Assembly: GCF_000143415.4 (NCBI RefSeq)
Contig: NW_003314290.1
Coordinates: forward strand, 859,586-923,585
Origin: Selaginella moellendorffii
Lineage: Eukaryota > Plantae > Lycopodiophyta
Length of the DNA stretch: 64,000 bases
Reading direction: 5' to 3'
The translations under genes and the position numbers were made by a program. Within the stretch, counting starts at the first letter, position 1. Each line of letters starts with the position of its first letter. Positions 1-52,823 of the stretch are shown piece by piece. Under the pieces are notes generated by a model. That model ran no database searches. It was not told the DNA's origin and saw only the letters and a program-made list of their open reading frames with translations.

Positions 1-2466
1 CTGTCTAATCCCGGCCACTATACTTTCCTGGTCTTTGAGTCCATCCGGGTGCATCGGCCGTGGGGAACCCTGAGGAATCATAGGTTCCCCAGTTATGGGA
101 TCTCTCTTGAAGAGTTCAATGCCGTCCACTGGCAGCCACACTGTGTCCCATTCTCTCATCTTGTACCTCATCACTGGAGCACCGTCACACATGCTGAAAT
201 GAAACTGAAGAGGCTTGGAGTGGCCAATCAGCGTTTCGGATCCGTCCCTGATGTAGCCTCTTACAAACCCCTTAAAGTCTGGAACCTCTGTCAGAAGTGC
301 AGCTTCAACAGTGCCTTTGATGCAATTTTGGAATTCATCGTAGAGTTGTGGGAGGGTGAGGACATTGGATGGCCGGAGGGACTCTGCCAGGTGACTGAAC
401 ATGGCATTGACGTCTTCATGAGTGTGCCCAACCATGAGAAAGCCAAGTGTAACCGTTTCAAATATGCCTTTGGCAACAAGCATCGCCAAGTACGCGAAGA
501 CGTACATGTTTTTGTTCTCACTGCCAGCATTGTCTGTTTGGAGCAGAAGATGGGGTGGAAGGCCATATCGGCCGCAAGAACTTCCTTGAGATTCTGCTTT
601 GTTTGGATGAGGCTGTGCATTCACCGGGCGACCAGCCTCGTCGGAATGGCATAAGGCCTCACGTGATAACCCTACAATCTGACGGCCAACATATTCACTG
701 GGATGGCATGGGGCCCCACGCGATACTGCAAGCCTTTGCTCCTCCTCCAGCTGAACCCTGTATGGGGTTCGATCGACAAGGGCCTTATGCAAGGGTTGGC
801 CGTTCAACTCAGTCTGCGCACTCTGCAAAGACCTTAAGTGTTTTGCTAGGGACGCAATCATCATGTTTGCACCCCCGCCACCCCATAGAGGTACAAAGAA
901 GTTCCCATAGTTCTGGGCACCATGCCCATGAGCGATTATGCCAAATAGAGACACAGGCAGCTGCATGGATGAAGAGATTGCCTTGGGGGCAGGATTGAGT
1001 CGAGGTAAGCACGTCTTTTTCTGGTCCATTTTGTCGTGGATGATGCAGAGGTAAGAGTCAGGTCTCTCCATGGAGAGAATCCTGTTATGATAATATGCAG
1101 TCCTGCAGCTTCTCTGCTCGATGTTGTGGTCGAGCCGCCTTCTAACCAACGTCTCTCGCTCTTGAGCGCTGCAAGAATTCTTCGACAAAGCCATTTTGAT
1201 AGCAGTGCACTCGTCACACTTTGAAAAGCTGGAGTACTTTCCTATACTCACATCCCTGAACCTGTTGCTCCACAATCTACTAAATCTAGATTGGCTCAGC
1301 TTCCTGTAGCCATTACTCTGGAGTTCCCGATTCACATCTTCCAATATGGCCCCCTTGGTATACATGGAAGGGAGAACTCGTTGGGTGTCTCGTGTTCCAT
1401 CTTCCAAGAGGCGGGTTTTATGTGGTTGTTGCTCGCTACATGTCTCGACAAACCTCTTGAAGATTGCCTCTCCATATACAACATGACCCCTGGTTTTGTG
1501 CGTATCGTCGTTCCCATGGACTGCCTGTTGAACCCTTTGTTCCTCGAACTCAGTTTTGATTCTGTAGAATGTGGTTCGAGGGACTCCATAAATGATTCTC
1601 CATACCTTCATGCAGACCAAACCCCTCTGGAAGACCATGCCCCCCACCTGATGTTCTGAAGCATCAACAGATGACCGTAATGCCTCATACACAAAATTGC
1701 GAGCTGCCTTCCAGGACAATGTCTTGTATCTTGCTCTCTCCTCTTCAATAGCATCCCAATCAGCATGTTGACAGCACCTCCTCTTGCAACAAGCAACTGT
1801 CGAGACCATTCGAACCTCCATCGCCATTTTCTGCCTTTTCAGTTCATTGCTCAGATCCCTTTGGCTGCGCTTTAGGAAGGTGTACTTTCTTTTCCCATGA
1901 AGAGATGTTCTGTCATCAGTTGTAGTGGTGTTTGATTGTGAATCCTTCACATTCTCAAACACTAAGTGCCTCAATTTCCACCGCACAATGCTTCCAATAG
2001 TCAGACTGTTTTCTTCTGTGTCAACAACCTCTAAAATCGCAACTCCAATATCATCCCAACCCAATTCTTGATTAGCAACCGCATCTCTTGGATCGACAAC
2101 TGTGGTTAAGCCCTCAGCTACCACCTCCCCCTCGGGGTTGTTTAGAAACACCTTCGCCTGAATCCATGTAACACGGTTCTTAAGATCCACGGAGGGAACA
2201 TGCGTCGCACTTGCACTGTCCCCAACATCTGCTTTCTTCTAAAGATTTTTCAAGGCAACAATAACATTTACCCCGACGACCATCTCTCCTCGTTCAATAG
2301 CGACCACATTCCCATCGAAGACAGTCTCTACTGATACAGCAGCATTGCCTTCCCCAAGCCTTTGACAGTGTATAACAAAGTTCCGATCCATAGACACAAG
2401 GGTCCCTTTTGCAACTCTCTTCCCACCATTCAAAATGTAAACCTTTTCCCCAACCCTGAAGGCCAT
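1..2466 (-). pseudogene. Sola1-like DDD transposase with two N-terminal Tnp1/En/Spm-like repeats; one in-frame stop; runs off the window edge
   Basis: Manual translation: the frame from ATG 2466 has a TAG at 2239-2241 and is then open to base 1. Motifs: CCKRRCC, VCMKVWRIIYGVPRTTFYR...HGN, FSKCDEC, LCIIHDKMDQKKTCLP (D1), LPPHLLLQTDNAGSENKN (D2), FLMVGHTHEDVNAMFS (D3 region). A splice acceptor (ttttctgcactttcag) lies just before the ATG. Confidence 0.8.
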
Positions 2467-2830
2467 TCTGAAAGTGCAGAAAAGAAGTTAAGACCATACA
2501 AAAAATGATTGGAAAATGGCCTAAATCATAACATACCAAACAACCTCAATAGCATGAGGCCACATGCCATTATTCAAACATGCTATTGACACCCACATGA
2601 AATTTCGCATTCACAAAATTGGCATGAGGCCTCATGCCATCTTGATATACACACAGCTGCAGGCAAGTAAAAACATACATGACAATACGCTAGCCATGAA
2701 ATTGCAAGGGCCCAAGATGGCATGTGGCCTCATGCCATTTCTAAATGTGGTCCTAAGCCATTCCATGGTGAACATACCAGGAAGCACAAGTGCTGAATAT
2801 CAAGAGGAAGCGGTAGCCACACCAAAGACA

Positions 2831-2965
2831 GTGCCGCTTGCAACACCGCAACTACTCGTAGCGCCGCTCGCAACACCGCAACTGCTCGTAGCGCCGCTCG
2901 CACAAACTGCCACTCGCATAAACTGCCGCTCGCAATGGCACTCGCAATGCCGCAACTGCTCGTAG
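2831..2965. repeat. 30-bp tandem repeat (gcgccgctcgcaacaccgcaactgctcgta) with degenerate tail
   Basis: Two near-perfect units at 2831-2890 followed by partial units. Confidence 0.8.
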
Positions 2966-3761
2966 ACGCATAAACCACAGCCCACAACGCCGCTTACACA
3001 AGCAACGCTCACTGCACTCAGTGGAACCAAGAACACGGTGCACAAAAATGATAGACCTAGGAATGAGTTCGAGAATTCAAAAATAACACACGCTTGAACG
3101 TCACATCAAATCCTCTGACAAACCAGATTTTATGATTCCTCTGAAAAATTTCAAATTGAGTAGCTTCTAGACTTTGCTGTCGGAGGTTGAACTTTGTCAC
3201 ATCATGTCCTTGCCTCGATCCAGCTGTGCCATGTCAGTGATTCGAATTTTGCCATGCCATGTCAGCGATCCGCACCAAGATTATTCGCCGTGTAAAGGAA
3301 TAATTATGCTGTGTGTGTACGTCCATTTATGGCAATATAAGGCCACACGCCATTCAAAGAATAATGCTAGTCGAGCATTTTTTGGTGCATTTTTGGGTTC
3401 AAAATTGCATGAGCCCACACGCTATAAAGTTTACCTGTACCAAAAATAGAAACAGCTTTATTTACTTGGGAATTTAAGTGGTTGAGGCATTTTTAAACTT
3501 ACAAACACATGCCCTACTTACATTCCTTTGGTTGCTTAAAATTCAAAAATATTATAAACCTTTCTTTTTGCATTTTCAATGTTTTCAATTATGGTTTTTG
3601 ATTTTCGCAGGACCAGCCTAGTAATCTATTTGCATCCCGTCATGTTTATAGCTAGCTTTCGTTTGTCCCCTTCGCTAGCCTGAGATACATCTGCTCGGCA
3701 TCTGCCTCTTACAGCATTTGCCCAAAAAGGGCATCTTTCTTCACGCAGCATTTGCCACATG

Positions 3762-3787
3762 TTTAGGGTTTAGGGTTTAGGGTTTAG
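3762..3787. repeat. Short interstitial plant telomere repeat (TTTAGGG)3+
   Basis: tttagggtttagggtttagggtttag. Confidence 0.9.
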
Positions 3788-4976
3788 CAATTCAATAGCT
3801 TGATAAACATGCAAATACAGAACTTGATGCAAAATCCTTTGATATGTCACAATGCCCCTAGGACCATAAACACATTTCAATAGAGAGGGTCTTTTCATTT
3901 CATAACTCCTTACGTAGATCTTGATGAAACCAGAGTTAGTGAAGTTAGTTTCTTGTGATCCTGCATCTGATTGTGATGTCCCTTTGCAGTGTCGATGGAA
4001 AGGTCAATGCACACCAAACTGTAAAATCTTGGAGCAAAATAACGGTTGGATCTATGGCAAATGCCCCTGAAACATTGTAAGGCTCGTGTGGTCTCATGTG
4101 GTGTCCGATCGAGATGCTTCTTTGCAGGGTCATCAAGAAAGACATTGTATACCATTCTGTAAAATCTAGTTGCGATCTAACAGTTGGATCTCCAGAAAAC
4201 TCAAAAAAATCTCGTGCGTGTCAGAATATTCTAGGAATATACTCCTATGTGCCCTTGAAAATGGCATGCGGCCCCATGCCATTCAAGAGATAACGCCAGA
4301 TGACACCGAGAATTTTTTGGTGCATTTTTTGGGTTCAAAATTGCATGAGCCCACACGCTATAAAGTTTATCTTTGCCAAATAGAGAAAAGTTTATCTGTG
4401 TCATGTGAGGTAGTTACAGTCTTTTGTGCTCGGCATCTGCCTCTTGCAGCATTTGCACTGAAAGGGAATTTTTCTCCATTCAGCATTTGGCCCTGAAAAT
4501 GGCATGCGCCCACACGCCATTCAAGGAATAACGCCACAAGACATTTTTGGGTTTAAAATGTTTAGGGTTTTTTGGGTTTTTTCAAAATATTTTGGGTCCA
4601 ACGTTTTTTGGGTTTCTTTGGTTCAAAATTGCATGAGTCCACACGCTATAATATTGATTTGAGAGAAAAATAGAAACAGATAGAATTTCTTTATTTAGCT
4701 GAACATCTGCCATTTTTGGAAATACAAGATGCTTTGGAATATCCAATCATGCATGGTATAAATATAGCGAGGGTATTAAATGATATCCCAATCATGATCT
4801 TTCTTTTGGATTTCGTGTGCATGCAGTCCGAGGAATGATGACGTTGCGGATTTCTTTTGGATTTTGCGTGCTTGCATGCGCGCGGCAATCCAGAAATTAA
4901 TGGTGGCACCCAAGTCCGAGGAATGATGACGTGGCGGGATTACCAACCGTTGTGACATTTCGCGAGGTTTTGCATT

Positions 4977-7900
4977 TTGCTTCGTACTCGCGCTCGCACA
5001 CTCGCGCTCGCATCGCGCTCCCACTCGCGATCACGCTCACATTCGCGCTCATCTACCTTCTCTACAGGTTTCTCATGTGCATCGGCGTCCACTCGTGCTT
5101 GCATCACACTCACGCTCGCATCGCGCTCGTGTGCATCGGCGTCCACTTCAAGACACACCCAGTTTGTAACTTCGCCGCCAACTCCGCCGCCCACTCCGCC
5201 ACCCACATGCAGCCCACTTGGCGTCCCGGGAGATTTCAGCGCCACTCTCCAACTGTAAGTGGCAGAGTAGCCTTGCTGCTACGATCCGCTGTACACACAG
5301 TGCACATTCGCCAGCGAGTCCGGCCTCGATTGTCACGGCCTCCATTCGGCTTCAAATGGTAAGTCTTTTAGGCCAAGTAGAAAATGGCATGAGGCCACAT
5401 GCCATTCAGTAGCAACATTGGCATGCACCGATTGGGCTCTCGAGTGCAGTCCGGTTACAGATGGCGTGTAGCCTCACGCCATCTTAGGATGCAGCCTCAA
5501 GACATCTTATGTAGTGGTGAATGGCGTGTGGCCTTATGTTATTTCCAGCTGCTAGCTTTTCATCTGTCAGCTCTAATTGTTGTGCATTTCTGAATAGGCG
5601 AGGAATTGTGTTCTTCTTCCAGCCACTGTCAATGTGGATGCAGAGAAGGGGGAGGAGCTCACCAGTTGGACTTTCGGGATGGAAGGCGAGGATCTGATGC
5701 TGTACAACACAGATGGTGGGAGAAAAAAATGCATGGGGATCCTCATCCAAGTGACAGACACTCCATGCAGTTCCATGCAAGAATATGGACTGGCACTTGT
5801 GGTAGAGACAACGTCCGCCTTCAAGATCCACCTTGCACATCCTAGCGGCTTCCCGAAGGGGGGCAGCAGCTATGAGGAATTCCTAGAGGGAGCTAGGGAG
5901 AGGTTGTCCAGGAGGCCCACAATTTCAAAGACGCTGCGGGTCTATGAAGATCACATGGAATCCATGGACCTCACCTACGGCGATGTTCAAAAACTATATT
6001 CCAACATTGAGCCGTTGAGAGTGCCTCCAGTTCGCGAAGCGAAGGGGAAGGGGGTCGATCTGGAAACTACCCCGAAGCAGAAAAGGGTGGTCAAGCTCAA
6101 GCCGACGTCTGACTCTACTGCTCCAAAAAAGAAGCTACTCAGTGATGCCATTGCCTCGGGTTTGAACACTACACCCACCAAAAAGAAGAGCCGCAAAGAG
6201 CAGAAAGAGCAAGAAGAGGCAGCAAAAATCGTCGCAGATAATAGTACTTGTTATTATTCCAACAAAGTATATACAATCGACGTGAGCCGTATCGACATCC
6301 AAAGCAAATACAACCACAGGCTAGTATCTAATGAGTGGGTGGAGAAACTGAAGCAGAAGATGCTGGCAAGTCCAGTAACACCCGACATCGCAGACGTGAT
6401 CCCCTACTACCGAACAATGAAGGGCGAGACGAGGTTTCCAAACTTGATCAATAGGAAGGTGTTGGACGATCAGAACATCCGGTTCTATGCCGTCTCCGGG
6501 CAGCATTCTAGCTTGGCGATGCAACAGATAGTTGTGGATATTATGGTGGGCGAGGAGGTGAGGAAAGTCTTCAAGACAAGAGTTGTCCGCCTGATAAAAG
6601 GCAACTCGCCCCTCCGATCTATCATATACATCTCCCACGCGTAGAATGTCAAGCAAGAAACGTGCTACAAATCGGGTCTGCACGAGACATTGGCACGAAC
6701 ACGGAAGCTCTGGGTTCAACTGAAGAAGCCACAAAAACCAGGACAAGGACGTGCACTAGCAACTAGCGCCTGGCAGGTAAGCCTCGTTGCATGTGGCATA
6801 ACATGTGGCCTCACGCCATTTCCATTGCAGGAATTCTCGAGTCTTCTCTCGAAAACACTGAGGGTCAATGACACACTCAGCTTCCATAACATTCTACTCG
6901 CGACAAAAGTTGTTTTTGACAAATGGGTAGATGTGCTGAGGAGGTACCATGACGGGGAGTTGCTAAACTCAATGGGTGTGGAGGACGGCCGGAAGCCCAA
7001 TGATTTGAAGCTCAAGGCTTGTGTTTCTCGCGGTCTCTAGATGACAACGACCTTCTGACAGTGGCTAATGCTCTTCTACGTGGTGAGGTAGTCTTGAACA
7101 AGACCAAAATGACTCCCGGCCATATTGTGACATACGAGGACTTGTGCATGACTCTGAGAGCTCGTGCGCTATTGAAGGATTGGATCTTCGAGCAAGTGGC
7201 TGTGGAGAGGGTGAGCATCGACACCACGCAAGAGATGATGGAAGAGCTAGACTTGTCAAATGAAGACATCGACGAGTACGTGAAGGGGGCCCCCAAGTTC
7301 ATCGATCTGCTGCGGGATGCCACGAAAAGTAAAGCTGAGAAGTTGGATCAGTATCCAAATTTCATTAAGAGGGATGTCGACCGCCGGCTTCAGAAACAGC
7401 TCGACCCTGCAGCAGAGGCCTATCGAGAACCTTACCGGGTATACGTGAATTCGGATGAGGATCAAAGGTGGAGGAGCATCGTTTCCCGCGGAGATGAGCA
7501 GGTCAAGAACATCTTTTGTGTGATGGACTTCACAAACGAGGAGATCACTCATGCAGACGAAGTCAGCTCCATCATTGACTTAATAGTGGGACTTGCGAAG
7601 GTGGAATCTTCAGTCCACTATATGATCTACGACTCCGAATCCTATCACAAGTTCTGGAAGGCCTTGAACGAGGTGAAGGCTCGGTTGAAAGGCAAGGAGA
7701 TGCGGGAGATCCATGGGATAATGGCTAAGAAGAAGATACCGACGAATGTCCGCATCTTCACACTCACCCTTGTTATTGGTCCTATAGCAGAGTGGGACTG
7801 GAGTGACTTCCCAGCTTCGTTCAACAAGGCCGATCGAATTGATCTGAGGGAGGTCAATTTACCCGTGCCTGAGGAACTGAAGACGGCTATGGAGCTTTCG

Positions 7901-10900
7901 AATCCAAAGAAAGCTCCAGGTGCAGCATGGGAAATGCTCAGCTGGGTCTTCAACGCAATAGCGGGTGACTCCAAGGGCAAATGCGTTGTCGAGTACAACT
8001 GCGGTGGACTATTCTTTCGAGCCGCACTACTCAAGGGTGTCCCGTGTGTTGCGGTGACAAACTCCATTGAAGAGGTGACTTCAATGGAGCATATAATTAC
8101 AGTTGCCAAAGAAAAACAGTATCTTCTCTGCGAACCTGGTGAGTACGCACTTTAAGTTTAAATGTTATCTCACAAGCTCTGTATGCAGGAGTGTGGCCAC
8201 CCCCAGATGCTGAAACGGCATTAACAGCTACTGATGTTAGGCCGAGCTCACAACCTGCACAAGGTAAGGTCACGTGAGGCCTCACGCCATTTTGATTATA
8301 GATAGTTGTGAATATTCAAACACGAGGACTGAAAAGCGCACTGGTGGCGCGTCGAAGAAGGACAAACAGACAAGCAATAGGAAAAAAGGAGGTACAAATT
8401 ATATTTGCAATGGCGTGTGGTCTCATGCCATTCCTTGCAGGAGATACTTCTTCAAAGGCAAAACAGGCAAGCACCAGCCAAGCTCAAACTGACAGTGGTC
8501 ATAAAAAGCGAAAGCACGTTGGACAGTCGTCGGGATCAGAGGCGTTTGATTTGAAAAGGAAGAAGGGCAACGAAAAGATGATAGGTAATGCCTTGCGGTT
8601 ATGGCGTGTGTGCTCATGCCATTCATTGCAGATCAAGGGCTGAGTGAAAGGAGCCAGTCACCACCTCCTGACTCAGATTCCTATGGCGGACTCCCCTTCC
8701 CCAATCTCAATGGAGAGGTACAATGGATGAGGGATGCTTTTCAAGTTAGGGCCACGTTTTTCTCATCTCGTCGTCTTCGAAGGGTGCAAGAACGTGCAGA
8801 AACCATGTTAAGACAGTCGGGTGAGGATACGGTCCTAGGTCAAGCACTAAAACAGGCTATGGTTGTCTTGTATTTTGAGATGGAGACTCGGCCAGATGAT
8901 TTTCCCAAGATGGTCCTGGAAGAACAAGCCATCCAGCCTGAGCAGCCTATGGAAGAAATGTAGGAGGGGGATGAGGAGCCAGAGAAAGATAATGAGCAGG
9001 AAGAGCAGAAGGACGAAGAAGAGGAGGACGAAGAAGAGGAGGACGAAGAGGACTTGGATGGTCCTCACAATGGTGACGATCACAATAACGACGATGACGA
9101 TGAGACAATGGCCAGCCTGAGGTGGCCAAAGAGCAGCGGAGGAAGGTCATACAAGACAAACCATCAGGTAAATAATAGTACATCCATTCCTAACCTTTTA
9201 CCATTTCTAACATTGTCCATGTAGGTCGCAGAAGAAATGGTAAGTAGAGATTATTCAGTTGAATTAAGATACAAACTCTAGCCTTTAGTGTCGAGGAAGG
9301 ATAGTGCCAAGCAAGGGTCGAAACGTATGTCCAATCCTTCAGAATCAGCAGTGCGCCCAAGTAATATCGGTCCTAGTTCCTCAATAGCAGTTGATGGTAA
9401 ATACAGTATAGTCGATTCAATGTGCTAATAAGTTTGTTTTTAGTAGCCAGTAGGGAAGATACCATCTCAATCGAAGGGAGATATTTGGACATGCATATGG
9501 ATCCGCCAGTGGACTCTACTTGCCTGCAAGAGTCATCAGAGCTGGTGGAGGCTACTATCCATATCAACGCCAAGTAAGCTGACCACGCTCCACTTGATGC
9601 TGCCCATACCACTGAGTCAATCTTGTCCACGTATCCAACTGACGGTGACCAGGCGCCATTGGACCCGCATGAGGCCGCCCCAGCCGCCGAGCCGGTCGTA
9701 TCCTCATTTCCAATGTGTGCCCAATTGTCTGACTACGCGCCATTGGAACCTCCCTACACCGCCCCTGCTGCCTGTTCGGTCATGTCCACTTTGCCAACGG
9801 AGGCACCAGCTGAAATGGCGTGTGATCACACGCCATCGGAACCACCCCATGCCACTGTTGAGCCAGTTGTACCAGAGTCTACAGCTGAAATGGCATGTGC
9901 CCACACGCCATCGGATGTGATTGACCCCACATTGCAGAGGAGAGTATTTCCGCCCTTCACGTTTCCTCAACCAAAACCCTCTCAACGACCATCGGGAGCA
10001 CCATTCGCTAATATTGTAGATGGTAAAATTGACTTGTACCATTTTTTATGCTGATGCATTTTATTTCAGAGTCACGGCGAAGGTACTGTATCGTTTTTGA
10101 TCTTAACGGTGTCCTTTTCTCCCATGAGCGTGGCTCGTCCTCGAATGTCACTGCACCCTCCAAAGCCTGCGGTCGCAAGTTGGTCAAAAGAGACAGATTC
10201 ACATTAATCACACGGGAGAAACTACGGGATCTAATAATGACCATGCGACACTTAAAACAGAGGGCCGGGTTCAATTTGCAATTGGGAGTTTGGACATCCA
10301 TGATGCGCCACAATGCAACGTTGCTACAGATGATGCACAATCAAACGCGAGTAATATTACCATTTGACTTTCTCCTAACGCAGGAGGATTGCTTGACTAT
10401 GGTCCATGTGAGGGGTAGCAAGCCCATCTTCGTCAAGCCAGAGGCTGTAGTGATGAACCGGACTGCTAGGTCAAGTGAAATCCTCATCATCGATGACTCG
10501 CCGATTAAAACTGCAGCGAACACGCACACATATGCAGTGCACCCCATCTCTTGCAGTATGGAAACTAGGGAGAAGAAACCGTTCTGGGGGACCTTGCAAA
10601 ACGGCTTGAAGCGATGGTGATAGAGAACCGGCCAGTCCAGGAGGTGGCTGCAGAAATCAACCAAATGGCAGATGGAACGGTATATCAGAAGCCATTTGAT
10701 CGGACAGACACCAGTCATCATTTATGGCATGTATATTGTCTAGTCAAGCACTATCCGCATCTCCATAATCTGCTCAACCGGATGGGTTCTTCGACCACTG
10801 AACATGAGCGTGGACGTATTAGAGAAGAGATGGCATTACTATTGGGTTTAAATCCTGATAGTGTGGAGAGTGATAAAATTCCAAGATTATTGTATAGGCG

Positions 10901-10925
10901 TTGGAGGCAAAAAATAACAGTTTGA
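4977..10925 (+). pseudogene. Multi-exon transposon cargo gene: ParB/Srx-like domain, possible degenerate N4/N6-DNA-methyltransferase fold, acidic/low-complexity region, FCP1/NIF-like HAD phosphatase domain
   Basis: ORFs 5634-6644, 6690-7040, 7019-8155 and 8601-8963 are joined by GT-AG introns (6777-6830, 8139-8188, 8264-8301, 8392-8440, 8585-8631); the link to 10048-10925 through intervening exons was not fully traced. Lesions: TAG at 6642 and 8961, frameshifts at about 7037 and about 10615. Motifs: FYAVSGQHSSLA; CVVEYNCGGLFFRAALLKG; IVFDLNGVL...ILIIDDSPIK. The 5' start is uncertain. Confidence 0.65.
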
Positions 10926-11389
10926 GATGGCATGTATTTATTTAAAAATGTAACTTATTATGGCATGGGGTTCCATGCCATTGTATTAATATTAAAAGAC
11001 AATTCTTTGAGAGGATTTGCATTATACTAGAAGTGTTACAGCATGTTATTGGAAGTCTACGAAGTTGTTTTATTAATAAGGGGAAAGTAAAGATTGAATG
11101 GGGACTTGGGCTCCACCTAGACTCGGAGCAACTGAGCCAATATTAAAAGGATGGAAAGAAATTAGACGACGATGACAAGGAGAAGAGAGAGGTGAAGCAG
11201 TGGCAGGGGGAGGAGAAGTGATTGAGTAGACATTTCCTTGTTTAAAATAAAATGGCATGTGCCTCAATGCAGTTGAATTTTGTTATATTTATATACTATA
11301 TAAAGGTTTGGAAACCTTATTTTACAAGTGGGATAATGACAATTCCCACTTTAACGAAATAGAGCTTTAAAGCTGTCCATGGCCCCATC

Positions 11390-14300
11390 ATTTGGCTACC
11401 TTACCATTCTTTCCCTTGAAGCTTCCATTTTCACCAAATCGGAGCAATTGGGAATTCATCTTTGGAAACACATTGCCTTTCCCACAATCTGTTAGCACCC
11501 AACACCTTAGTATTCTTATCCTAACTTTGCCATTTGGATTCTTTTCCATGATTCCCATGGCTCTTTTCTTAGCCACTAGTCTTTTGCTCCTATCCTTGAT
11601 TGTTGCACTCAGCAACATAGGATCGCTACCTCCATTCTTGAGGTATCCTTTCAGTTCTATAGCAAAGACTTTACTTTGCCAAATCCAAAGGGTGTTTACC
11701 CTTAGTATGTCTCTTTAGCATCTTCTACTATAGGCTCTATCCACAACCCAACTTTGAGACCCTTCCATGGGTCCCTATAAAAACTACTTTCTTCAGACTC
11801 ACTATGCCATTGCATTAACACAGCTCATGTCCTTTGGGTGTTTTTCCCACTTGGTCACCTTGACCAAGCCACACCATCTTCAATAGTTCAAATTAACACT
11901 TTGAACTAGAAATTTTATTCCTTAACCTCACAAAGATCTTGTTCTTGTTTTAACCATAAAATCACTTAGTGATCAAACTTTGGCACCTTAACAGGTTTGC
12001 CAATAGCTATTAAGCCTTCCAGACCTTTACCATGACCCCGGGGGCATCCCCCACACTTGGCAGTGCACCCAGGCCAACCCTTCCAGCCAAAGGTCCATAG
12101 CAACTGAAACTGAGTGTCCCCATCTCATTCACCACGTCCTTGGTGCCATTTGCACCAAAGTGTTTAAGTTAGATATGCCGAGCTTTCACGCTAAGTAATC
12201 TAATCATGCATCATGACTCTAGGGGCATCCCCCACTTAGCGGTGTGCCCAAACTAGTCTCCTTACTAAGAGTTCATGACCACCAAAAAATGAGTGTCCTC
12301 ATATTTCACTCACCCTAGTGAGTTGGGACTCAAACCCAAGCACTAGAGGGTTGGGACTCGAACCCAACCTTTGTATATGCATCTACGGATGGCATCACAC
12401 AAGATGCCTGGCGTGATTCCCCACGCTGATGCACCAACTTATACTTAAAGCGCGTTACAAATCATAGCTTGGGAACTTAGTTCCTCCACACTACCAAGTC
12501 CTCTCACTTGACAAGTCTATGATCATGCATGGACTCCTTCATGCTTAGCCCCATGGGCCACCCCTTTTGAAGTTAGCACCTTCAACTAGGGGATTTGTTC
12601 CCCTGACTTGCCAATCTTGTTTAGCAAGTCATCCGACTAACGTAACATGGTTTCATGCATAAGCGTGAAAGTCCTAGACCATCAACTTTCATTTAAAGCT
12701 ATCCCTTTAAACACTTGGGAATTACTTCCCCAACCTTGATAGTATTGTCTTATGGCAAGCTTTAAGACTACACTTCTGCTGCGCCACTCTGATTTCACGT
12801 GTTTTATAAACTATTTACACTTGGCTCTCTAAGTACTAAGCTATTTAGAATTATCTTTGGGAACCTTGAAGGAACTCTATCCTTAGCTTGCTAAAGTCTC
12901 TCTTTTCACAAGCTTTATAATTGCTATATGGTCTAACATAGACAATTCCATGCTTTAAACTCTCTATGGCACCATGGTTACTAGTAACAATATGGTCGAG
13001 TGCCCACTTGATTCTCCACTCTCAACTGACATAACCATCCTTGGTTATGCTCTTCGATTCCTATAGTTTGGTTCTATCCCTTTACTACTTGCTTTTGGCC
13101 TCATATATTTCCTTCAGTTATTCACCTCTAAACTAGGAAAATAGATTTGCAGTTTCTACCATGCCTTAGCAAATATTCTTAAGGATGAACTTACCCAATA
13201 CCTTAGAGAGTGGTTCCTCAATTCAGGTATGCTCACTTTATAATCCTACACACCGGGATTATCGTTGCTACTTATGGGCCTCTATATACCCATCACTAGT
13301 CTTGCCGAAATTTTATTTTTGGCTTTGTTCAATTCGTCTTCTCCCGTCTCCGCAACTTTTGACGTTTGGATAACATCTTCTATCCATCATTCACTAGGGA
13401 CTTAGTCCCTTAAGCCTTACTATTGCCCTTGCGACACCAAACATCACCTCTTGGTGTTCTAGAGTGTTTGGGTGTCCTAATGATGGCTTCCTTGACAATG
13501 AGCATTTTCTTTTATAACATTGACTTACTATATCGCAATATAAACAATTTATCCCCCATAAGGGTATATCTAACTTTCTTATGCCATTAAGAAGCCTTGG
13601 GTAGCTATCTTTTACCAGTTTAACCAATTATTTTACACTTCTTGCTTAGTTGCCTCATAGTTGTCAAGTTCTACAACTCATTGCTGGTGCTTCCACACCT
13701 CCATCATTATCTGAGTCACTACACTCTAACCGCATGCCTTCCAGCTCATTCCCATTTCGATCAGGATTCCTTTGGAAAGGGGTTTTCATTACCCCACCAA
13801 CTTGACCTCAAGGCATCATGCCTTGGCATATTCGATGTCTCCACACTATCGGCTCCACGAGCTTACATTTATGACACTTCTTTCTCGTGTTTAGGTCCTT
13901 GCCAAAACCAATATAATTCTTTCTCATGCCAACTATCTGTTAGCACTGCACCATAAAGTTTACACACAACTTTGTGTCAAAGTTGCTTTATTTTGGGAAC
14001 ACCTTTCCCATGACTTTAGTATGGCATATTCTACCATCAATGAAATACCCACGATTCTCATACTTAAATTGTATGATCCTCTCTATCCTTCGTGGGGTAC
14101 AACACACCTCAGTCCAAATACTTCCACCAGTCCTTTAGAACTATTGCTTGACTCCACTCGAGTTATTTAGTTTTTTGGACTTTACTAATGAACGACTTAT
14201 AAGGTCCCTTTTTGAAGTGCCAACTCTTTAGAATACAACTTCTTGTATTCATATCCCACTTATAAAGACCATTTATGCAAGTGTTACTCTAACACTTGAT

Positions 14301-19700: not shown

Positions 19701-20599
19701 TTGTGATAATCAATTGCAAGAATGATGATTAGAGTGTTGTTATCAAACTTTTGTTCCTCATCTAACAACCTCAGTCCTAAAGAAATTAATATATGAGCAA
19801 GGCATAATTCTAATAGAGCTTATAACCATATGTCGATAGTGTTTTTCCAAAGTTTTCAATATATGATAATATCAGATCAAGAGCCACCTTTGTATATATG
19901 ATAGTAATGTATATCAATTTTGGGAGCAATATCTTTATATTTGTGCTTGTCCTGGCTTCTATAGTGATATAGCATTTGTGGTTCTAAAAAACAAAAACAT
20001 CTAGTCCAATTAAGGGCTATTTAATCAGATAAGTCATCTCCTCTTCCTCATTTTAGTTTCATTTCTTTTTACGAATCCCCAAATTTTCTATTAGCACCAT
20101 TGTTGCTTGAAACTTGAAAAGTTAAACTTAATGAATTGAAAGTGAACAATGATATGGAATGCAAACTTCATTAACTTAGAGTTTTTACTTTCTCATAGCA
20201 ATCTTTTTCAACTAACACAACGTCCAACTTATGTTGAAGTGATGGACGGTTAACAAATCTCCTCTTCACTCATCATACATGAGACTAAATTGTGGAATTG
20301 ATTGTATTTAGAATTTATTATAGCATTTCTTTCAATGTTGTTTTCATCTTGAAACATTCATCATTCTTATATTCTGTAGTTTGAGTTAGTGAATCTATCC
20401 AATGGATTAGAAGTAGTGTAATATTAATTAAACAATTCTCACCTTCTTCAAGTCCTTTTTTTTTTCTTCTCAAATCCAAATTTCTATGTTTTCATGAGTC
20501 TTAATATGCCAGTTGTTAAGATTTTGGTTCTGTCTTCACAATTGTTATTCTTTCAATGTCAACTTCATGTATTGGAATTAAATTCATTATTCCCTCCAA

Positions 20600-20990
20600 G
20601 GATGCTAATTTCAAGGATGTTTTCAATAAAAGGAGAGCTGACATTTTACATCACATTAACTTTATAATTGTCCCATCAATCTTGTGGAGGGGAAATCACC
20701 ACTATTTAGTTCTATTTACAATATTTCATTAATGAAGTTGAAGGCATCATATAGATATATTAAAAAAAATCTTTCTAAATGTTTTATTCAACATTCTTAA
20801 TCTCCACCTAGTTCATTTATCTTCTGTGTATCCAAGAAAGATAAATCTCTTTGTTTGGTGATTGACTATTATAACCTAAACAAATCCATTTTCACTGATC
20901 CTTGAGAGATATTATAGTGGTTCTCCAAAGCTTGGTTCTTCACCATGATTAATTAATGTGGCACTTATAACCTGATTCACATTTGACTCA
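20600..20990 (+). mobile_element. Decayed Ty3/gypsy reverse transcriptase fragment (chromovirus-like)
   Basis: Translates across stops and frameshifts to FKDVFNKRRADIL...CPINLVEGKSPLFSSIYN...YIKKNLSKCFIQHS*SP...FCVSKKDKSLCLVIDYYNLNK...TYNLIHI. Confidence 0.75.
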
Positions 20991-21918
20991 AGAAGAACAT
21001 AACCATCATATTTATCTTGTATTCTAACATATTTGAAAATACAAAGAAATGTTATTTAATCAAGATTTAGTGAAGTTTTTAAGATATATTGCTTTTTCAT
21101 AATACATCATTATAAATTCTACTAAAGTTTCCACTATTCTTGAGTAGTAGTGCCTAACTTTTATTTATGATATCCAATGTTTTTTTTCTTTACAAAATTT
21201 TATTAATTTTCATTTAAGACTTATTTGAAATCACTCTTTCTACCATAATTTATACCCTTTTCTATGTTTTTTTATTGCCTAAACTTTTTTTTATCTCCTA
21301 AAATCTATATTCACTTCCATTCTAATTCTCATCTATCTAGACAACATAAAACTACATTTCATTAAAATAAATGCTTTAAATTTTCCTTTAGATATTGTTT
21401 TATCACAAGAGGAACCAAGTAATGAGTTTCATCTAATTTTTTTTCACACTTAAAAATACACACATGTAAAGATCATTTATGACATCTTCAATAAAAAAAT
21501 TGCTTACAATTGTGAACCCTTTTGAAATTTAGTGTTATTTCTTTAAAGATTTTTAGTTAAAATTCACACAACGGCAACACCTACATGTAGTGGTTTGCCT
21601 TTAAAGATATAAATACTTGCTTTTGTTTTATATCTAAAATTACTATATTTATTTATTGTTTTTGGATATGTTTTTGTGGTCATAGAGGCTATTGACTTTG
21701 GTAAGTACAATACATAACCATACTAAATCAACAACCAATCCTTATGCTCTTGATATAAATAACAAAGAAACTAGTTTAGTCTACAACATTGGTAAGGGAT
21801 ATAACATTTAGAGCTTTTGTCCCTTAACCTCTCACCACAACACTTTTACTATTCCAAAATCATGGCTCTTCATATTTAATAGCTCCATCACCTTTATTGC
21901 TAAACTCTAAAACATATA

Positions 21919-22018
21919 NNNNNNNNNNNNNNNNNNNNNNNNNNNNNNNNNNNNNNNNNNNNNNNNNNNNNNNNNNNNNNNNNNNNNNNNNNNNNNNNNN
22001 NNNNNNNNNNNNNNNNNN
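21919..22018. other. Assembly gap (100 N)
   Basis: Run of N. Confidence 0.99.
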
Positions 22019-23087
22019 GTGTGCTGAAGGTGGAGGGAAATCAACACATAAATTTTAAACCTAATAGTTACCATTAATTCAAGTGGCCCACTAGATTAAA
22101 AGAACATTCTCTAGATACTACAAAGTGATACTAACATTTTAGTTTTAAACATATATGACAAGAAATCCATTACATATTATTTAAAGTAAAGCTTCCAAAA
22201 GTCTACATTATAATTTAAAATAATTTCTATAATTAGAAGAAAACCAAGTGTTACTATTATGTAGTAAAAAAAATTTAATATTTAGTTTAATAGTAATATT
22301 TTAATTATAGTAATCTGGAATTTAAACCTATATTTTAAGGCATAATTCATTTTCATTAATAATTTTGCATAAAATAATTTAGTTTATATGAATTTAGATA
22401 GCTAAATCATTATTTAAGCAAAATATTTTATAGTGTGATAATAATTTAAACTTAGATTGAGTATTTTATGTGCACTATTCTAAATATATAAAAATCCCAA
22501 AAACATTTGGTTTTGCTATGGTATGTGAATTTTTTATTTTTATATTAATATTTAAAAAAATTTAAAATAAAGAGTATTAATAAATATTTATATAAAAAAA
22601 TTATGTCTAATTAAAGCAAGTTATTAGTTAAAAGTAATAATTTATTTTTATTATGGTTATATATATTATATTCTTAAATAATCCTCATTTCAGGATACCA
22701 ACTCTCCCATTATTAAAAAAAATTACTTTATTCGAGAGTATTACCTACTATGCCCATCATCCTATTTTGTTATCCTTTTATTCGTTCTTTGATCCACCAA
22801 TGCACTGGTATAATTTATAATTTCATTTTTAAGTGGAGTATTTAGCATTTAATTTGGAAACAAAATTATAAGTTTTATATATTTAATTTTGATTTGAATC
22901 AAAATAATTTCTACTATTCCTTTCATAAATATGATGGGATTTTAATTGAATTAGATTATTTAAAAATTAATGTAAAATTTAAAAGAAAAACATCATCAAA
23001 TAGTAGATGAAGTTTAGGAAATTTCATATCAAATATCATTCAAAATGTTAAAACAAATTAATTAAATAATTAAAATAAAATTATAAT

Positions 23088-26000
23088 TATGAGGTCCAAA
23101 TGTATAGCTATGATACCGTATATTAATATTAGTATTGTGGGATTTTGGTAGCCATTGGACTAGTTTCAATCTGGACCACTCACTCTTATATATAAACTTA
23201 CATTTACATTAGTGGAAGTGAGGGATAGCTTTGATTGTCCTTGAGGAGTGTTAGGATTTGGGATTTTGGTTTATCTCTAGCTTTTGCACCATTTAAATCT
23301 CCTTTTCTTTATAGCTTTTTCAATTTATTCTCTTTTACTTTTTACTTTTCATTTTTTTTCATGGTAGAGCAATAGCCTCCTCCTCTTTTGACTCTAGAAT
23401 AGCAGTTGATGCAATTGCTTGATGTTATTCAATTATAGTTGAATAATCAGATTTAGTTGATAGTGGCATTTATAGCATAGGGTACAATTCCTCATGCTTT
23501 TGTTGCCAATCCTTGCTTGTAATCGGAATTCTTTTGTGGGAATTCTAGGATGATGTATACAATTGATTTGATCACTTTATGGTGATTGCCATATATCATT
23601 CTTGAGATGATACTTGATGTTTGTATGAGTTTCTCATATATCTTCAAAAGACAGTGCTACAATGGTACAATAGTTTGAATGCAGCCACTCGTGAGGATTG
23701 GAGCATTCTCCCGAATGTCTTCAAATGCATATTTGGACATACCAATGATTGTGATGATGCCTTTCAATAATTGCATTGTCTTCGTTAAAGGCCATTTGAA
23801 TTCATGATGCAATTTGATGTTCATTTCCGAAGCTTCGTGTTTCATATGGAGCTAAATATATTAAAGTGGATCAAGTTGGGAATGTTGTGATTAACACTTT
23901 ATTAACATCTTGTAGGAACTGTGTATACACTTGCTCCAGCCACCTTTAACAATGCTCTTTGTTTGGTATAACATTATGAGACTTTGCCTTTTTTACTTCT
24001 TGTTGCACATCTTTCAATTTCACTTCTTATGGGAGATAGTCTTATTTTAATGAAGGTTGATGCTATTGCTGCCCAAGTTCAAGAGCAAAGGTGAGGACAT
24101 GGTTGTGGACATGATATCCATTGTTGGGCATGTTTTAGAAGAGTGTTTTTCAAAAGTCACGAAGTGTTTGGGTATATGAACCTCATATTGTGACAAAGCC
24201 TAATGGGAATATTCATTTTTGCATCAACTATCGTTCGTTAAATGAAGTGACAATTTCAAATGTGTACCCTCTTCCTCACACTATTAATTTCTTAGATCGT
24301 TTCGAGAGAAGTTGTTAGTTCACCAAGTTAGATCCTACTTCTGGTGTTGGCAAGTATCGATGGCAAAAAAAGATATTCCTAAAACTGTTTTTCATATATC
24401 ATACATATGCATGTGCATGGGATGAAGTGGACTTGGTTGTGTGTGTGGGTGATCTCTAGCTTGGGTTGCAATCATTGTGGGTGGTGCTGAGTCAAATTTT
24501 TGACCTCATCCTTGGTATAGATTGGTTACAATGCAATCATGCTAAGTATGATTTTAAGGCTTCTCCCCCTTGTCTCATACTTCTTTATATTTTATCCATT
24601 CCTCTCACTTCTGCACCTCTTCATCCCTTTATTTTTACCTTTATTTCCATTACTTTTATCCCCCCATTATTTCCTTCTATATTTCTGTTTTGTTTTGCTC
24701 TTCCTTTTCCCGATCCCTTCGACAATTTTTGTGTTGCAGCGGTTGACCGGCTCATGAGGGAGTATTTTGATCTCTTTGAATTTGACCTATTGCCTGTGCC
24801 AAGATTGCCACACATCATCCAATTCCAATCAGGGATGCTTGTCCAATCAAGGTTCTTACTTGTTGTTGGTCACCCAAAGAGATCAAAATTTTACGTGCAA
24901 ATGTCAAAGAGATGTTGAAGAAGGGTGTTATTTGGAAGGCACGAAATCCTTAGGCATGTGAACTTTATCTTATGACGAAGCTTGATGGGAGTATTCGTTT
25001 TTGCATCGACTATCGTTTGTTAAATGAAGTGACAATCTCGAATGTATACCCTTTTCCTCACATTGCTAATCTCTTAGATCATCTGAGACGAAGTTGTTGG
25101 TTCACCAAGCTAGATCTTGCTTCTAGGTATTGGCAAGTATCAATGGTTGAAGAAGATAATTCTAAGACTGATTTTCATACATTATTTTGTTTGTACAAAT
25201 TCTTGGTAATGCCGTTTAGTTTGAACAATGCTCTAGCAACTTTCTAGCAGATGATAGATGAGGTTTTTTGCGATATGCTAGAGATGACTACTGACTTCAT
25301 TGATGATGTTTTGATCCACTCAGAGGGGACGTGGGAGGAGCACGTTCGTGATGTTTGTAAAGTGTTCGATCAGCTGTGGGACATTAATTTAAAGTTAAAG
25401 TGGTCGAAGTGCATGTTTGGGTCCAAGGACACAATTTATCTTGGGTACCGTATTTCTCATGAGGGTTTGCAAGTTGATTTTGACAAACTTGTGGCTATTC
25501 TAAAGTTCTTTACTTTGAAGTGTGTGAATGATGTGCAACGCCTAGGCAAGGTGCAGTATCTTGGTCATTTTATGGATCATCTTTCTGATCGCACTACACC
25601 GTTGGGAGCATTGCTGAAGTCATCAATGTCATCTTTCATCTGGTCTCTAGATTGTGAGCGAGTGTTTGTGGATCTTAAAGAGCTTTTGATGACTCCTTCG
25701 GTTTGACTACACTTGATCTTTTATTTTGCACGTGAATGCTTCTAATATTGGTCTTGGAGGTGTGTTGATGCAAGAAAGCCCGAGTGTGCCTGGTCAACGC
25801 CATCCCATTGCATATATAAGCCGTACATTACAACTAGTGGAAGTGAATTACTCCATGACAAAGAAGGAGTCTTTAGCAACAATCTGGGGTTTCGAGAAAC
25901 TTCATGCATATTTACATGGTTCTCAAATGTTATTTGAAAGTGATCATGTTACCGTTATTTCATTATTGAAGTGAAAGAATTTGATTAGTCATACTACTCA

Positions 26001-39484: not shown

Positions 39485-40996
39485 TTATGTAATTAAAATG
39501 AAACTCTTTGTGTATGTGCTAGATAAAAGCAAGAAAGAGGAGGGGCACTTGGGTTCCAGTTGATGGATGGACGTCGCAGCTCTCTCAGCCCGTTCCAGGT
39601 CACCATGGAGCACACACGCAGCGAGCAACTCTGTCCAGGTTTGAGCATCCGGCAAGAATGGCATTGAATGCGCCAGCTCCTCTGCCTCGTCCAGCAGCTT
39701 CGATCGGCCCAGAATCCCTACCATGGCGCTGTAGTGCTGGAGCGTGATCGCTAGGCCGTGGCCGGCCGCGATCGAGTGAAAGATTTCCCTGCCGCGATCC
39801 AGCATCCCGACGTGGTTGAATCCGCTCAGCACGCTTATGAACGTGATCGCGGTCGGCACGACGCCATCCAGGATCATCGCGCCAAAGAGCTCGACGCCAA
39901 GATCGCCGTGGCCATTCTGCGCGAACGCCTGGATGAGGGTGCTCCAAGAGATCGCGTCTGGATCGGGCATCGCAGCGAAGATTCGTCTGCATTGATCTGT
40001 GTGCCCCGCCTGGGCGTGCGCCTGGAGGAGCGTGTTCCAGGCGGCGGTGGATCGCCCGGGCATGGCGTCGAAGAATCGATGGAGCTGGGCGATGTTCTTG
40101 GCTAGGGTGTATGCCTGGAGCATTGCATTCCAAGCCACGGCATCGCGCTGGGGGAGAGATGCGAAGAGATCCTCAGCTCTGGCGATATTTCCTTGATCCG
40201 AGAAGCCTTGGAGCAGCGCCGTGGAGGAGACGACCTCGTGGAGTGGCATCCTCGCGACGAGTTCTTTCACTTGATCCAGTTGCCGCGCTAGGGTATTTGC
40301 GGCGATGAGCGCGTTCCAGGAGATCATGTTTCTCTGCGGCATAGCATCAAAGATTCGCTTGCATTCGCGGAGATTCTCAGCTCTTGCGCTCGCCTGGAGG
40401 ATTCCTGTCCAGGAAATCGTGTCTCGCCTCGGCATTCTCTCGAAGATCTCCCTCGCCAGCGCCGATTCACCGCTGTGCGCGTAGCCCGTGAGGATCGCGT
40501 GCCAGGAGACGAGATCCCGCTGCCGCATTCGTTGGAAGAATCCCCAGGCCTCGCGCAGCCGCCCGGCCCTGGCGTGGACAGTGATCATCACATTCCACGA
40601 CACGGTGTCTCGATCGTCCATCCTCTCGAAGCAGGATCGCGCCTCTTCCAGACGCCCGCGATCGGCATACGCGACGATGATCGTGTTCCAGGCGCGGATA
40701 TTTCGCCCAGGCATCGCATCGATGAGCTCTCGCGTCTCTCGCAGAAGCCCGCCGCGCGCGTAGGCCGCGATGATCCGGCTCCAGGAGAAGCCATTGGGGG
40801 ATTCGATCGAATCGAAGAGCTTGCGGGCTTCGGTCACGCATCCACAGCTCGTGTACATGTCGAGGACGCTGTTGGCAAGGTGCGTGTTCTTCCCGAGATT
40901 CTCAGTGACTGAGATTTGCTCGTGGATCTTCTTTCCCAGGGCGAGATCTCTGCTATCAGCGCAGCTCTTGAGAGCTTGGATGATTCGTGCTTCCAT
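39485..40996 (-). CDS. Pentatricopeptide repeat protein, PLS/E class, intronless
   Basis: Tandem 31-aa S-type repeats (F..MP.R..VSW..) ending in HYSAMVGILGRSKLLDEAEEL...MPFLPDAQTWTELLAAC (E domain); no DYW domain. Confidence 0.95.
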   Translation of the reverse strand: MEARIIQALKSCADSRDLALGKKIHEQISVTENLGKNTHLANSVLDMYTSCGCVTEARKLFDSIESPNGFSWSRIIAAYARGGLLRETRELIDAMPGRNIRAWNTIIVAYADRGRLEEARSCFERMDDRDTVSWNVMITVHARAGRLREAWGFFQRMRQRDLVSWHAILTGYAHSGESALAREIFERMPRRDTISWTGILQASARAENLRECKRIFDAMPQRNMISWNALIAANTLARQLDQVKELVARMPLHEVVSSTALLQGFSDQGNIARAEDLFASLPQRDAVAWNAMLQAYTLAKNIAQLHRFFDAMPGRSTAAWNTLLQAHAQAGHTDQCRRIFAAMPDPDAISWSTLIQAFAQNGHGDLGVELFGAMILDGVVPTAITFISVLSGFNHVGMLDRGREIFHSIAAGHGLAITLQHYSAMVGILGRSKLLDEAEELAHSMPFLPDAQTWTELLAACVLHGDLERAERAATSIHQLEPKCPSSFLLLSSTYTKSFILIT

Positions 40997-49639: not shown

Positions 49640-50669
49640 TCTTAGAAGCTTTTTTCTCCCATACAAATTGGGCTTTGCTTCCTGCTAGTATGATCTAGAG
49701 AACAGAACATGAGGAACTTGTTGGGATAAAGATCTCTTCTATTCGTTGTGGGAGGATGCACAAGGCTTTTGTTTTTGGCAGTTTGATTCCTATTGTTTTG
49801 CAACTTGAGGTGCTCCTTGAGGGCTTTGATTGCAATCACTCTGAGTGGAGGAATTCTTGGGAATTGTATAAACAAATTAAAGAAAGTTTAGATCACAACT
49901 GTTAGATTGCTAGAATATACTTAGATATCCTATTCCTTGTACCAAAACTACTTCTCTAAACGGATATATCCAAAGATTGATGAGTTCTTTAAGAAATAAG
50001 TAAAGAAACTACTAGGAAGAGTAATGCCACTTTTTGCTCATAATATTTCTAATGTTTTCTTGGAGTATTTTCTTCTTACTTCTTTAACTAATTGTTCTTC
50101 ACTTTACTTTTGGATCATTCCTTACTACTAAAACCTCTCACAGAAAAAGTTTAATAAATAGAATATACTTGTTTTCATCTTCTTAAAGTTACTGTATATT
50201 ATTATTACATATTTATAAGGTCATTAGGTGGAGGTGTTGCAAGGGAAAACTCACCACACATTCAAGATCTCATTTAAAACATTAAGAAAATGTGTTATAT
50301 CATTAGTCTCAATAATGAATCTGCTGTAAACACACAGAATAATCTCTAAGTATATCCCCCACTTACACAACCAGAGGAAGGCTTTGACAAGACGAGAAGC
50401 CATGGCCTACAAGTTGGAAAAGAATAGCTAAATTCTGCTTATAGATGGAAGATAAAGGATGAAAAATGAGATGGTAGAGAGTCAATGAAAAAGGAAAATA
50501 TAAAGAAAAAAGTGTGGAGCTTGAAAATACCAAGGATAATGGATAAAAGAAAAAATAACAAAAGCTAAAAATAAAAAGCAATTTAAGAAAAGAGTTTCAC
50601 TTGAATCCCAACTTATAACATGTATAAGATTGTGTTTTAAGTATTTTTGACTCCCAAGATTAACTAAAA

Positions 50670-52734: not shown

Positions 52735-52823
<89 letters not shown>

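Follow-up and report, generated by a model that had tools for sequence, protein, structure and literature searches.

The 64,000-nucleotide stretch of the Selaginella moellendorffii genome analysed here (contig NW_003314290.1, positions 859,586 to 923,585; hereafter the window) holds at its left edge most, but not all, of one transposon of more than 11 kb, the left end of which lies beyond the window. Two genes diverge from a 3.2-kb spacer in this element, a DUF7869 transposase gene on the minus strand and a multi-exon accessory gene on the plus strand, and a private palindrome is scattered through both genes and the spacer. Our results therefore support an earlier interpretation made from the letters alone (the sequence-only reading), which had proposed a transposon of this size with two divergent genes and a motif of its own. 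The interval is best explained as most of one copy, now dead and methylation-decayed, of a land-plant DNA transposon that moves by cut-and-paste, has two genes and belongs to the DUF7869 superfamily, here called Sola1-type. That label rests on the sequence-only reading and on the analogy with a published element (PMC12477816). The coordinates of all features are collected in Table 1.

The palindrome ATGGCRTG-N6-CAYGCCAT was found 17 times at two or fewer mismatches, always within 703-10981, where the chance expectation is 0.04 per 64-kb window. Allowing three mismatches gave 21 sites, from 646 to 11273, and one further half-site at 3337-3356, which is in good agreement with the approximately 22 copies of a 22-bp palindrome that had been claimed. 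The claimed confinement to the interval also held, as the rest of the window contains a single three-mismatch match (at 40122), which is the chance level. The half-site CAYGCCAT occurred 31 times inside 1-11300 and three times outside, versus 3.7 expected outside. No host gene of the window contains the motif, introns included, and it is therefore not a general feature of introns or of the genome. The consensus can be extended to 24 bp, AATGGCGTG-N-GGCC-N-CACGCCATT, and its R and Y positions coincide with the two CpGs; of the 42 CpGs in half-sites, 24 have decayed to CA or TG.

The sites are not placed at random with respect to coding sequence. Two lie in the transposase linker, 12 in the spacer (including the 5' UTR intron), four in introns of the accessory gene, two in a coding repeat and two at the 3' end. 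Only four of the 21 sites are in coding sequence, versus about 62% of the element that is coding (P about 8e-5), and all four fall in disordered linkers, of both proteins. The widest gap between neighbouring sites is 1846 bp. Within the spacer, three modules (3337-3467, 4247-4403 and 4485-4691) each pair a canonical site with a ATTGCATG..CACGCTAT variant. Four tandem repeats of about 30 nucleotides (CTCGTAGCGCCGCTCGCAAC...) were also seen at 2825-2965, adjoining the first palindrome cluster.

Six tiny GT-AG introns were predicted from the reading frames and splice sites, five in the accessory gene and one in its 5' UTR. Five of the six (38-54 nt) hold one palindrome each, ending 4-11 nt before the AG. 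The intron at 6777-6830 has 54 nt and is stop-free, and its reading frame therefore fits splicing and read-through alike. A further short intron candidate at 9168-9224 contains CCTTTTACCATTTCTAA, which resembles the right half of the palindrome and its flank, and may hold a decayed site. The idea that the palindrome-bearing introns are copies of a larger mobile 'introner' unit was rejected, as their flanks are unrelated except for a short TTGCAG tail in two of them.

The transposase is represented by an open frame of 746 amino acids that runs on the minus strand from 2238 off the left edge of the window. It matches Pfam DUF7869 (PF25273) with an E-value of 2.1e-40 and 138.8 bits, and it is 30-45% identical to eight proteins of 700-1144 amino acids from other assemblies, 36% identical to proteins of 1074 amino acids, and 97% identical to one protein from a Logan assembly. 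Three motifs, HDKMD (with invariant D282 and D285), Q-x-DN(A/C)GSENKN and GHTHED-x-D, are conserved across nine aligned sequences. We take these to be the acidic catalytic motifs, and the residues that form the triad are inferred. A Foldseek comparison of the predicted transposase structure with the PDB gave no significant match, and no mention of DUF7869 was found in the literature searched. The stretches 2242-2466 and 2000-2238 of the gene encode repeated small N-terminal modules (V-x-L..G..V-x-P..LG). Full-length relatives carry a similar module at the C-terminus, with a faint match to Pfam DUF8039, and one N-terminal module is missing from the 97%-identical copy L001 through a 243-nt deletion.

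Table 1. Position of the transposon features, palindromic sites and neighbouring host genes in the window
Feature	Position	Strand	Remarks
Transposase gene (DUF7869, 'Sola1-type')	1..2466	-	ATG at 2466; premature TAG 2239-2241; C-terminal ~240-330 aa beyond window
Two palindromes	646-667, 703-724		translated in frame in variable, unalignable transposase linker (columns 690-790 not conserved)
Divergent spacer	2467..5678		12 palindromes/half-sites and repeated modules
Three palindromes	2549, 2619, 2717 (block 2549..2738)		upstream of transposase ATG; two also in 97%-identical L001
Half-site and variant palindrome	3337-3356 and 3404-3425 (3337..3425)		spacer
Four palindromes	4261, 4340, 4499, 4628 (block 4261..4649)		two repeated spacer modules
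Predicted intron, 5' UTR	5359..5409	+	palindrome 5384-5405
Two palindromes	5461, 5521 (block 5461..5542)		just upstream of accessory-gene ATG
Multi-exon accessory gene, dead in this copy	~5679..10925	+	from reading frames and splice sites
ParB/DUF3723-like region (lead only)	6231..6776	+	language-model features
Predicted 54-nt intron	6777..6830	+	palindrome 6798-6819
Methyltransferase-like region (lead only)	7019..8139	+	motif-I-like VVEYNCGGLFFRAALLKG; language-model features
Predicted 50-nt intron	8140..8189	+	without palindrome
Predicted 38-nt intron	8264..8301	+	palindrome 8269-8290; sole choice keeping frames open
Predicted 49-nt intron	8392..8440	+	palindrome 8410-8431
Predicted 47-nt intron	8585..8631	+	palindrome 8601-8622
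Two palindromes	9815, 9890 (block 9815..9911)		coding proline-rich tandem repeat, translated AEMAC(D/A)HTPS
NIF/FCP1-type HAD phosphatase-like domain	10084..10527	+	Pfam PF03031
Two palindromes	10960, 11252 (block 10960..11273)		3' non-coding end
Probable right terminus	11341..11372		30-nt block recurring downstream of truncated transposase in copy L001
PPR protein gene (host)	39485-40996	-	beside element
RRM protein gene (host)	46215-48170	+	beside element
KUP/HAK potassium transporter fragment (host)	54506-55468	-	beside element
AP2-domain factor gene (host)	62044-63312	+	beside element

Palindromes in related transposons

Scanning metagenome contigs with the transposase alignment yielded 80 loci, many of them from peat or moss-type samples and with plant genes in their flanks. 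Ten relatives were found to have palindromes of their own, of about 22-24 bp, mostly as arrays upstream of the transposase gene. The half-site is GGCTCAAACT in L002, L003 and L010 (three copies each), TTTACGGACGC in L028 (11 copies), TTTACGAACGA in L054 (11 copies), CCACGGGTG in L029 (10 copies), TTTCCTCTCGG in L024 and L053 (six and four copies), TTTCCAGTCGA in L027 (10 copies), GTTCCACTCGA in L025 (five copies) and TTTGGCCAT in L007 (three copies). In L028 one palindrome sits in a transposase-gene intron, at the point where the conserved PISVT/GMIAHG motif is split.

In a maximum-likelihood tree of the transposases, the loci that cluster are exactly those with like half-sites, and the starred clades with matching half-sites are (L003, L010), (L028, L054) and (L024, L053, L027, L025). 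Between close relatives the half-sites differ at two to three positions, and these are changed on both arms. Each relative has its own spelling, with both arms changing together and following the transposase tree, and this congruence is what would be expected if the sites co-evolve with a dimeric reader encoded by the element.

One of the relatives, L024, is a complete element of 7.1 kb with terminal inverted repeats of about 520-550 bp (1782-2302 and 8396-8904), one DUF7869 gene and six palindromes, and no second recognisable gene was found in it. The GGGAACGT repeats at its ends differ from its palindrome. The terminal inverted repeats of this moss-type element are packed with GGGAACGT-like repeats and start near an 18-bp palindrome, GGGACT-TTTGGG-AGTCCC, which is also distinct from the internal 22-bp palindrome. 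Searches of 86 relative loci (790 kb) by tblastn, phmmer and Pfam found no homologue of the accessory gene, and a Pfam scan of 47 long open reading frames (ORFs) flanking relatives returned host genes and retrotransposons only, with no ParB, methyltransferase or NIF domain. Among the elements compared, sites dispersed over more than 10 kb were seen only in the two-gene family.

Because the relatives have their own palindromes that track the transposase tree, and because one complete relative has no detectable second gene, the site system belongs to the transposon lineage as a whole and not necessarily to the ParB-like gene. The proposal of the sequence-only reading that the accessory protein recognises the palindromes is not supported by these data, since relatives in which no accessory gene could be detected, the complete L024 among them, have palindromes as well.

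The accessory gene and the decay of this copy

The only domain of the accessory gene that could be confirmed, by profile comparison, is the phosphatase-like one. As had been suggested, this part of the protein matches a phosphatase family, Pfam NIF (PF03031), with an E-value of 4e-5 and 23.8 bits against a cut-off of 21.8, over profile positions 1-126 of 160. NCBIfam gave HAD-IIIC (0.045), and phmmer with the phosphatase exon found no match in the PDB. The catalytic motif is DLNGV (10099-10113) in place of DxDxT, with the first Asp retained but Asn at the place of the second. The Asn codon does not differ from other copies among the differences listed (43 more are not listed).

Language-model features of the protein suggest two other regions, and both assignments are leads only. 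Residues 185-321 of ORF1 scored 0.96 with a cnidarian cluster, 0.95 with DUF3723 and 0.91 with a ParB_N cluster, and had 32 matches of at least 0.9 in the ParB_N set. SGQHS occurs at ORF1 residue 273, at the position of the DG(Q/H)HR motif of the ParB/DndB type, and no GERR or GxRR arginine patch was found in the region. Searches of Pfam (E<=1), NCBIfam (E<=10) and PDB sequences (E<=10) gave no match. No homologues were found from which to build an alignment, and a single-sequence AF2 model had a pLDDT of 33.6 and was unusable. DUF3723, among the best named matches, is a recurrent accessory gene of the fungal Starship giant transposons, and to that extent the likeness concerns a gene with a similar place in a giant transposon. 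However, there is no match at the sequence level and Starships move by a tyrosine recombinase, and the likeness is a lead only. The same features, in the portion 6231-6641, place the ParB-like part near both DUF3723 and the cnidarian cluster, and this may indicate that helpers of a ParB-like class are widespread in the large transposons of eukaryotes.

For ORF3 the highest language-model score was 0.93, with a 'trimethylguanosine synthase' cluster; PF01555 clusters came next, at 0.85-0.88. The catalytic motif (D/N/S)PP(Y/F/W) is absent from every exon, and as for the FxGxG SAM motif, only the motif-I-like NCGGLFF is present. ORF3 had no match in Pfam, NCBIfam, the PDB (phmmer) or phage sequences (tblastn). 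A HMMER search against 1.84 billion representatives found no homologue either, its lone match being a spurious RTX-repeat protein, and neither a word search for ORF1 and ORF3 nor a metagenome scan with ORF3 found any. This part may be a degenerate relative of methyltransferases. The ParB and methyltransferase domains named in the sequence-only reading are thus suggested by language-model features, whereas every sequence test failed to find them, the one structure model (of the ParB-like part) gave no usable fold and the DPPY-type motif is missing.

Comparison with other copies showed how this one has decayed. In DNA contigs that cover 5200-11190, the other copies read C in place of the T of the two TAG codons of the accessory gene (6642-6644 and 8961-8963), and they have an extra C after 7015, where the frame of the window copy shifts through a 1-nt deletion. 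Altogether the window copy carries three premature stops (one in the transposase gene and two in the accessory gene) and at least one frameshift, none of which is seen in other copies. When changes were counted by kind in sequencing run X4, the window had T or A against C or G in 62 of 78. The same held for 28 of the 40 differences listed, and 22 of these 28 are in CG or CHG contexts. The observed/expected ratio of CpG is 0.69 in the element versus 0.84 in the rest of the window. Two RNA-seq runs that carry the same species label had no reads on 5400-11190 (90% likeness, about 12% of the reads sampled). The window copy is dead, silent and decayed in a methylation-like pattern.

Two loose ends, at 5406 and 8291, were considered as gene-linking junctions in another copy and rejected; the contigs came from the palindromes at 2549 and 646, which share the motif. 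In the spacer, each run placed about 100-200 RNA-seq reads on a 40-nt stretch at 5252-5291. Every one of them continues into unrelated sequence on both sides, and the stretch is therefore shared with an expressed RNA of other origin. Nothing was found when 1-12000, which includes this stretch, was scanned for Rfam families and tRNAs.

Exact-product look-ups for other copies, with the 75-aa N-terminal ORF, the phosphatase ORF and the last ORF, found nothing. Of the 31-letter words sampled from the accessory gene (window 5300-11000), 60% are present in sequencing run X19, which carries a second species label. A near-identical copy of the gene therefore exists, whether under another name, in a close relative, or because of mislabelling or transfer.

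Candidate readers of the sites

How large eukaryotic DNA transposons recognise themselves, escape silencing and join their distant ends is poorly understood. We propose that the 22-24-bp palindromes are docking sites, acting at the DNA level, for a dimeric, sequence-specific protein encoded by the element. As the palindromes are lineage-wide, occur without a detectable second gene and differ from the terminal repeats, the most likely reader would be the product of the transposase gene, with its helix-turn-helix and winged-helix domains, or at least a protein that is independent of the accessory gene. Taking both of these together, we give this proposal about an even chance. A precedent for internal motifs unlike the terminal repeats is found in En/Spm (CACTA) elements, in which TnpA, a second DNA-binding protein encoded by the element, reads repeated 12-bp subterminal motifs, often in inverted pairs, and affects both transposition and methylation. 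In that system, however, the motifs are only subterminal, and TnpA comes from the same transcription unit by alternative splicing.

Several points weigh against a transposase-encoded reader. No result singles out one protein as the reader. Most of the relatives are short contigs, outside which an accessory gene could be situated; L024 may have arisen by deletion; and a fast-evolving accessory gene might escape tblastn and phmmer in relatives whose transposases are only 30-40% identical. Two specificities would also be required of a transposase if it were to recognise its terminal repeats and, in addition, a palindrome unlike them. Finally, the left terminus and the target-site duplication of the present copy are off-window.

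In the two-gene family, the sites are seeded at intervals of 1.85 kb or less in unconstrained sequence, that is, the spacer, tiny introns, disordered linkers and the 3' end. Such seeding would fit self-recognition of the whole element, be it for autoregulation, for anti-silencing or for a compaction that joins the distant ends. In Arabidopsis, the VANC protein of VANDAL21 binds short, lineage-specific and fast-evolving motifs in the non-coding parts of its own element. The two systems are alike in that motifs belonging to the element accumulate in its non-coding parts. They differ in that VANDAL21 is of the Mutator superfamily, its motifs are short and non-palindromic, and VANC is unrelated to the domains suggested here. 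The accessory protein, with its ParB-like, degenerate methyltransferase-like and phosphatase-like parts, would be a helper directed at chromatin or DNA, and it may possibly use the same sites.

The alternative that survives best gives the accessory protein the leading part. According to this model, which is that of the sequence-only reading and has been proposed for algal elements, the palindromes are parS-like sites read by the ParB-like domain, and the protein loads on its own element and bridges it, bringing the methyltransferase-like and phosphatase-like activities with it, either to protect the element from silencing or to assemble the transposition complex. We regard this as possible but rather unlikely. 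ParB proteins are palindrome-binding dimers, and in bacteria several parS sites permit bridging and condensation, so the pairing of a dimeric protein with a palindromic site is similar. The ParB_N/DUF3723-like features of ORF1, the SGQHS at the expected place and the restriction of widely dispersed sites to the two-gene family all point the same way. On the other hand, bacterial systems have a 16-bp parS, a CTP-binding GERR motif and a ParA partner. None of these was found here, where the sites are of 22-24 bp, the element has no ParA-like ORF, the GERR-type arginine patch is lacking, no Pfam, NCBIfam or PDB match to ParB was obtained and the AF2 model is of no use. Moreover, palindromes of the same size and behaviour occur in the relatives that lack a detectable accessory gene, L024 included, and this favours a reader that does not depend on that gene.

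The accessory-protein model also draws on published proposals that such proteins bind their own element, made for Sola1-1_Ec32 and for PAG3 of Plavaka, which has adjacent inverted-repeat arrays. Sola1-1_Ec32, from the brown alga Ectocarpus, is 21.5 kb long and encodes, on the strand opposite the transposase, a 1104-aa protein with ParB and N4/N6 methyltransferase domains (Genome Biol 2025, PMC12477816), and that paper proposes that proteins of this kind bind and modify their own transposon; palindromes have 0 occurrences in it. Compared by description, our element is similar in being a giant Sola1-type DNA transposon with a gene opposite the transposase strand. It differs in its land-plant host, in its extra NIF/HAD phosphatase-like domain, and in ParB and methyltransferase parts that are undetectable by sequence and lack the DPPY motif. 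Plavaka elements of the red alga Bostrychia encode the ParB-like PAG3 next to tandem inverted-repeat arrays that were proposed as self-binding sites (10.1101/2025.02.11.637652). Here too an accessory protein with a ParB-like N-terminus and inverted repeats occur in one element, although the transposase superfamily is another one, the ParB part is fused to a 2OG oxygenase, and the repeats are tandem arrays beside the gene whereas ours are dispersed through introns and linkers. With a Sola1 element carrying an opposite-strand ParB and DNA-methyltransferase gene in one of these papers, and a ParB-like gene with inverted-repeat arrays in the other, the element cannot be called undescribed, as the sequence-only reading had it. 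Both the Sola1 design with two genes and the notion of self-binding had appeared in print in 2025, for algae, and the headline is therefore not new. On the comparisons made here, the Selaginella element is a land-plant variant of this known design, in which a phosphatase-like domain is added, the enzyme motifs are degenerate and the sites are dispersed.

It is very improbable that a host transcription factor reads the palindromes as promoter or enhancer elements. Such a role would suit their concentration in the divergent spacer of this element and, in relatives, immediately in front of the transposase gene. However, the spelling shifts between close lineages from the same samples while the symmetry is kept, which is the pattern of a private, co-evolving reader, and the motif is absent from the host genes of the window. 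Very improbable too is a function as RNA hairpins, in the definition and splicing of tiny introns or in small-RNA production, with the symmetry in DNA incidental: five predicted introns are each built around one palindrome close to the AG, three of them fold better than shuffles (z -1.9 to -2.5) and the right arm supplies a yUnAy-like CTCAY, but in two others the fold does not surpass that of shuffles (z 0.03 and -1.2), a sixth intron lacks a palindrome, host-gene introns in the window lack the motif, the introns are predicted only and RNA-seq has no reads over the gene, 12 sites are in untranscribed or promoter spacer with two more in the 3' end and four in translated linkers, and the sites of relatives form arrays upstream of the gene.

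Returning to a reader encoded within the transposon lineage, what goes beyond the algal reports of 2025 is that the site system is lineage-wide, with a spelling that differs from lineage to lineage and a symmetry that is preserved, and that sites occur in a one-gene relative and in introns and are distinct from the terminal repeats. More speculatively, and with considerable doubt, we suggest that DUF7869/Sola1-type transposons generally use a private 'operator code', in which each lineage has its own palindrome of about 24 bp that co-evolves with a dimeric reader encoded by the element. The giant two-gene members would deliberately seed these sites every 1-2 kb, by way of purpose-built tiny introns and disordered linkers, for self-recognition. 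Such a code would be the eukaryotic equivalent of ParB/parS bridging or of anti-silencing of the VANC type, and neither for this superfamily nor for land plants has one been described so far. If confirmed by binding, the palindromes and their readers would constitute a natural set of orthogonal protein-DNA recognition pairs and a clear case of sites housed in purpose-built tiny introns. Which protein reads the sites becomes a directly testable question.

Ends and surroundings of the element

The window copy and L001 share a 30-nt block (11341-11370), which is oriented as a terminal inverted repeat would be and is not a palindrome site. The right terminus was for this reason placed at about 11366-11372, where it probably lies. 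L001, the 97%-identical copy, is internally deleted and abuts a LINE; sequence like that of a LINE reverse transcriptase (L001:2230-3577) follows directly after the deleted copy.

The remaining part of the window, about 52 kb, contains ordinary plant genes, including those for PPR, RRM, KUP potassium transporter and AP2 proteins, which places the element in a gene-bearing part of a land-plant genome. No paralogue of the transposase gene or the accessory gene was found elsewhere in the window. Two AT-rich blocks, at 20001-24000 and 50001-54000, have a GC content of 26-28% versus 42-58% in the background, and an (AT)n run begins at 41337.

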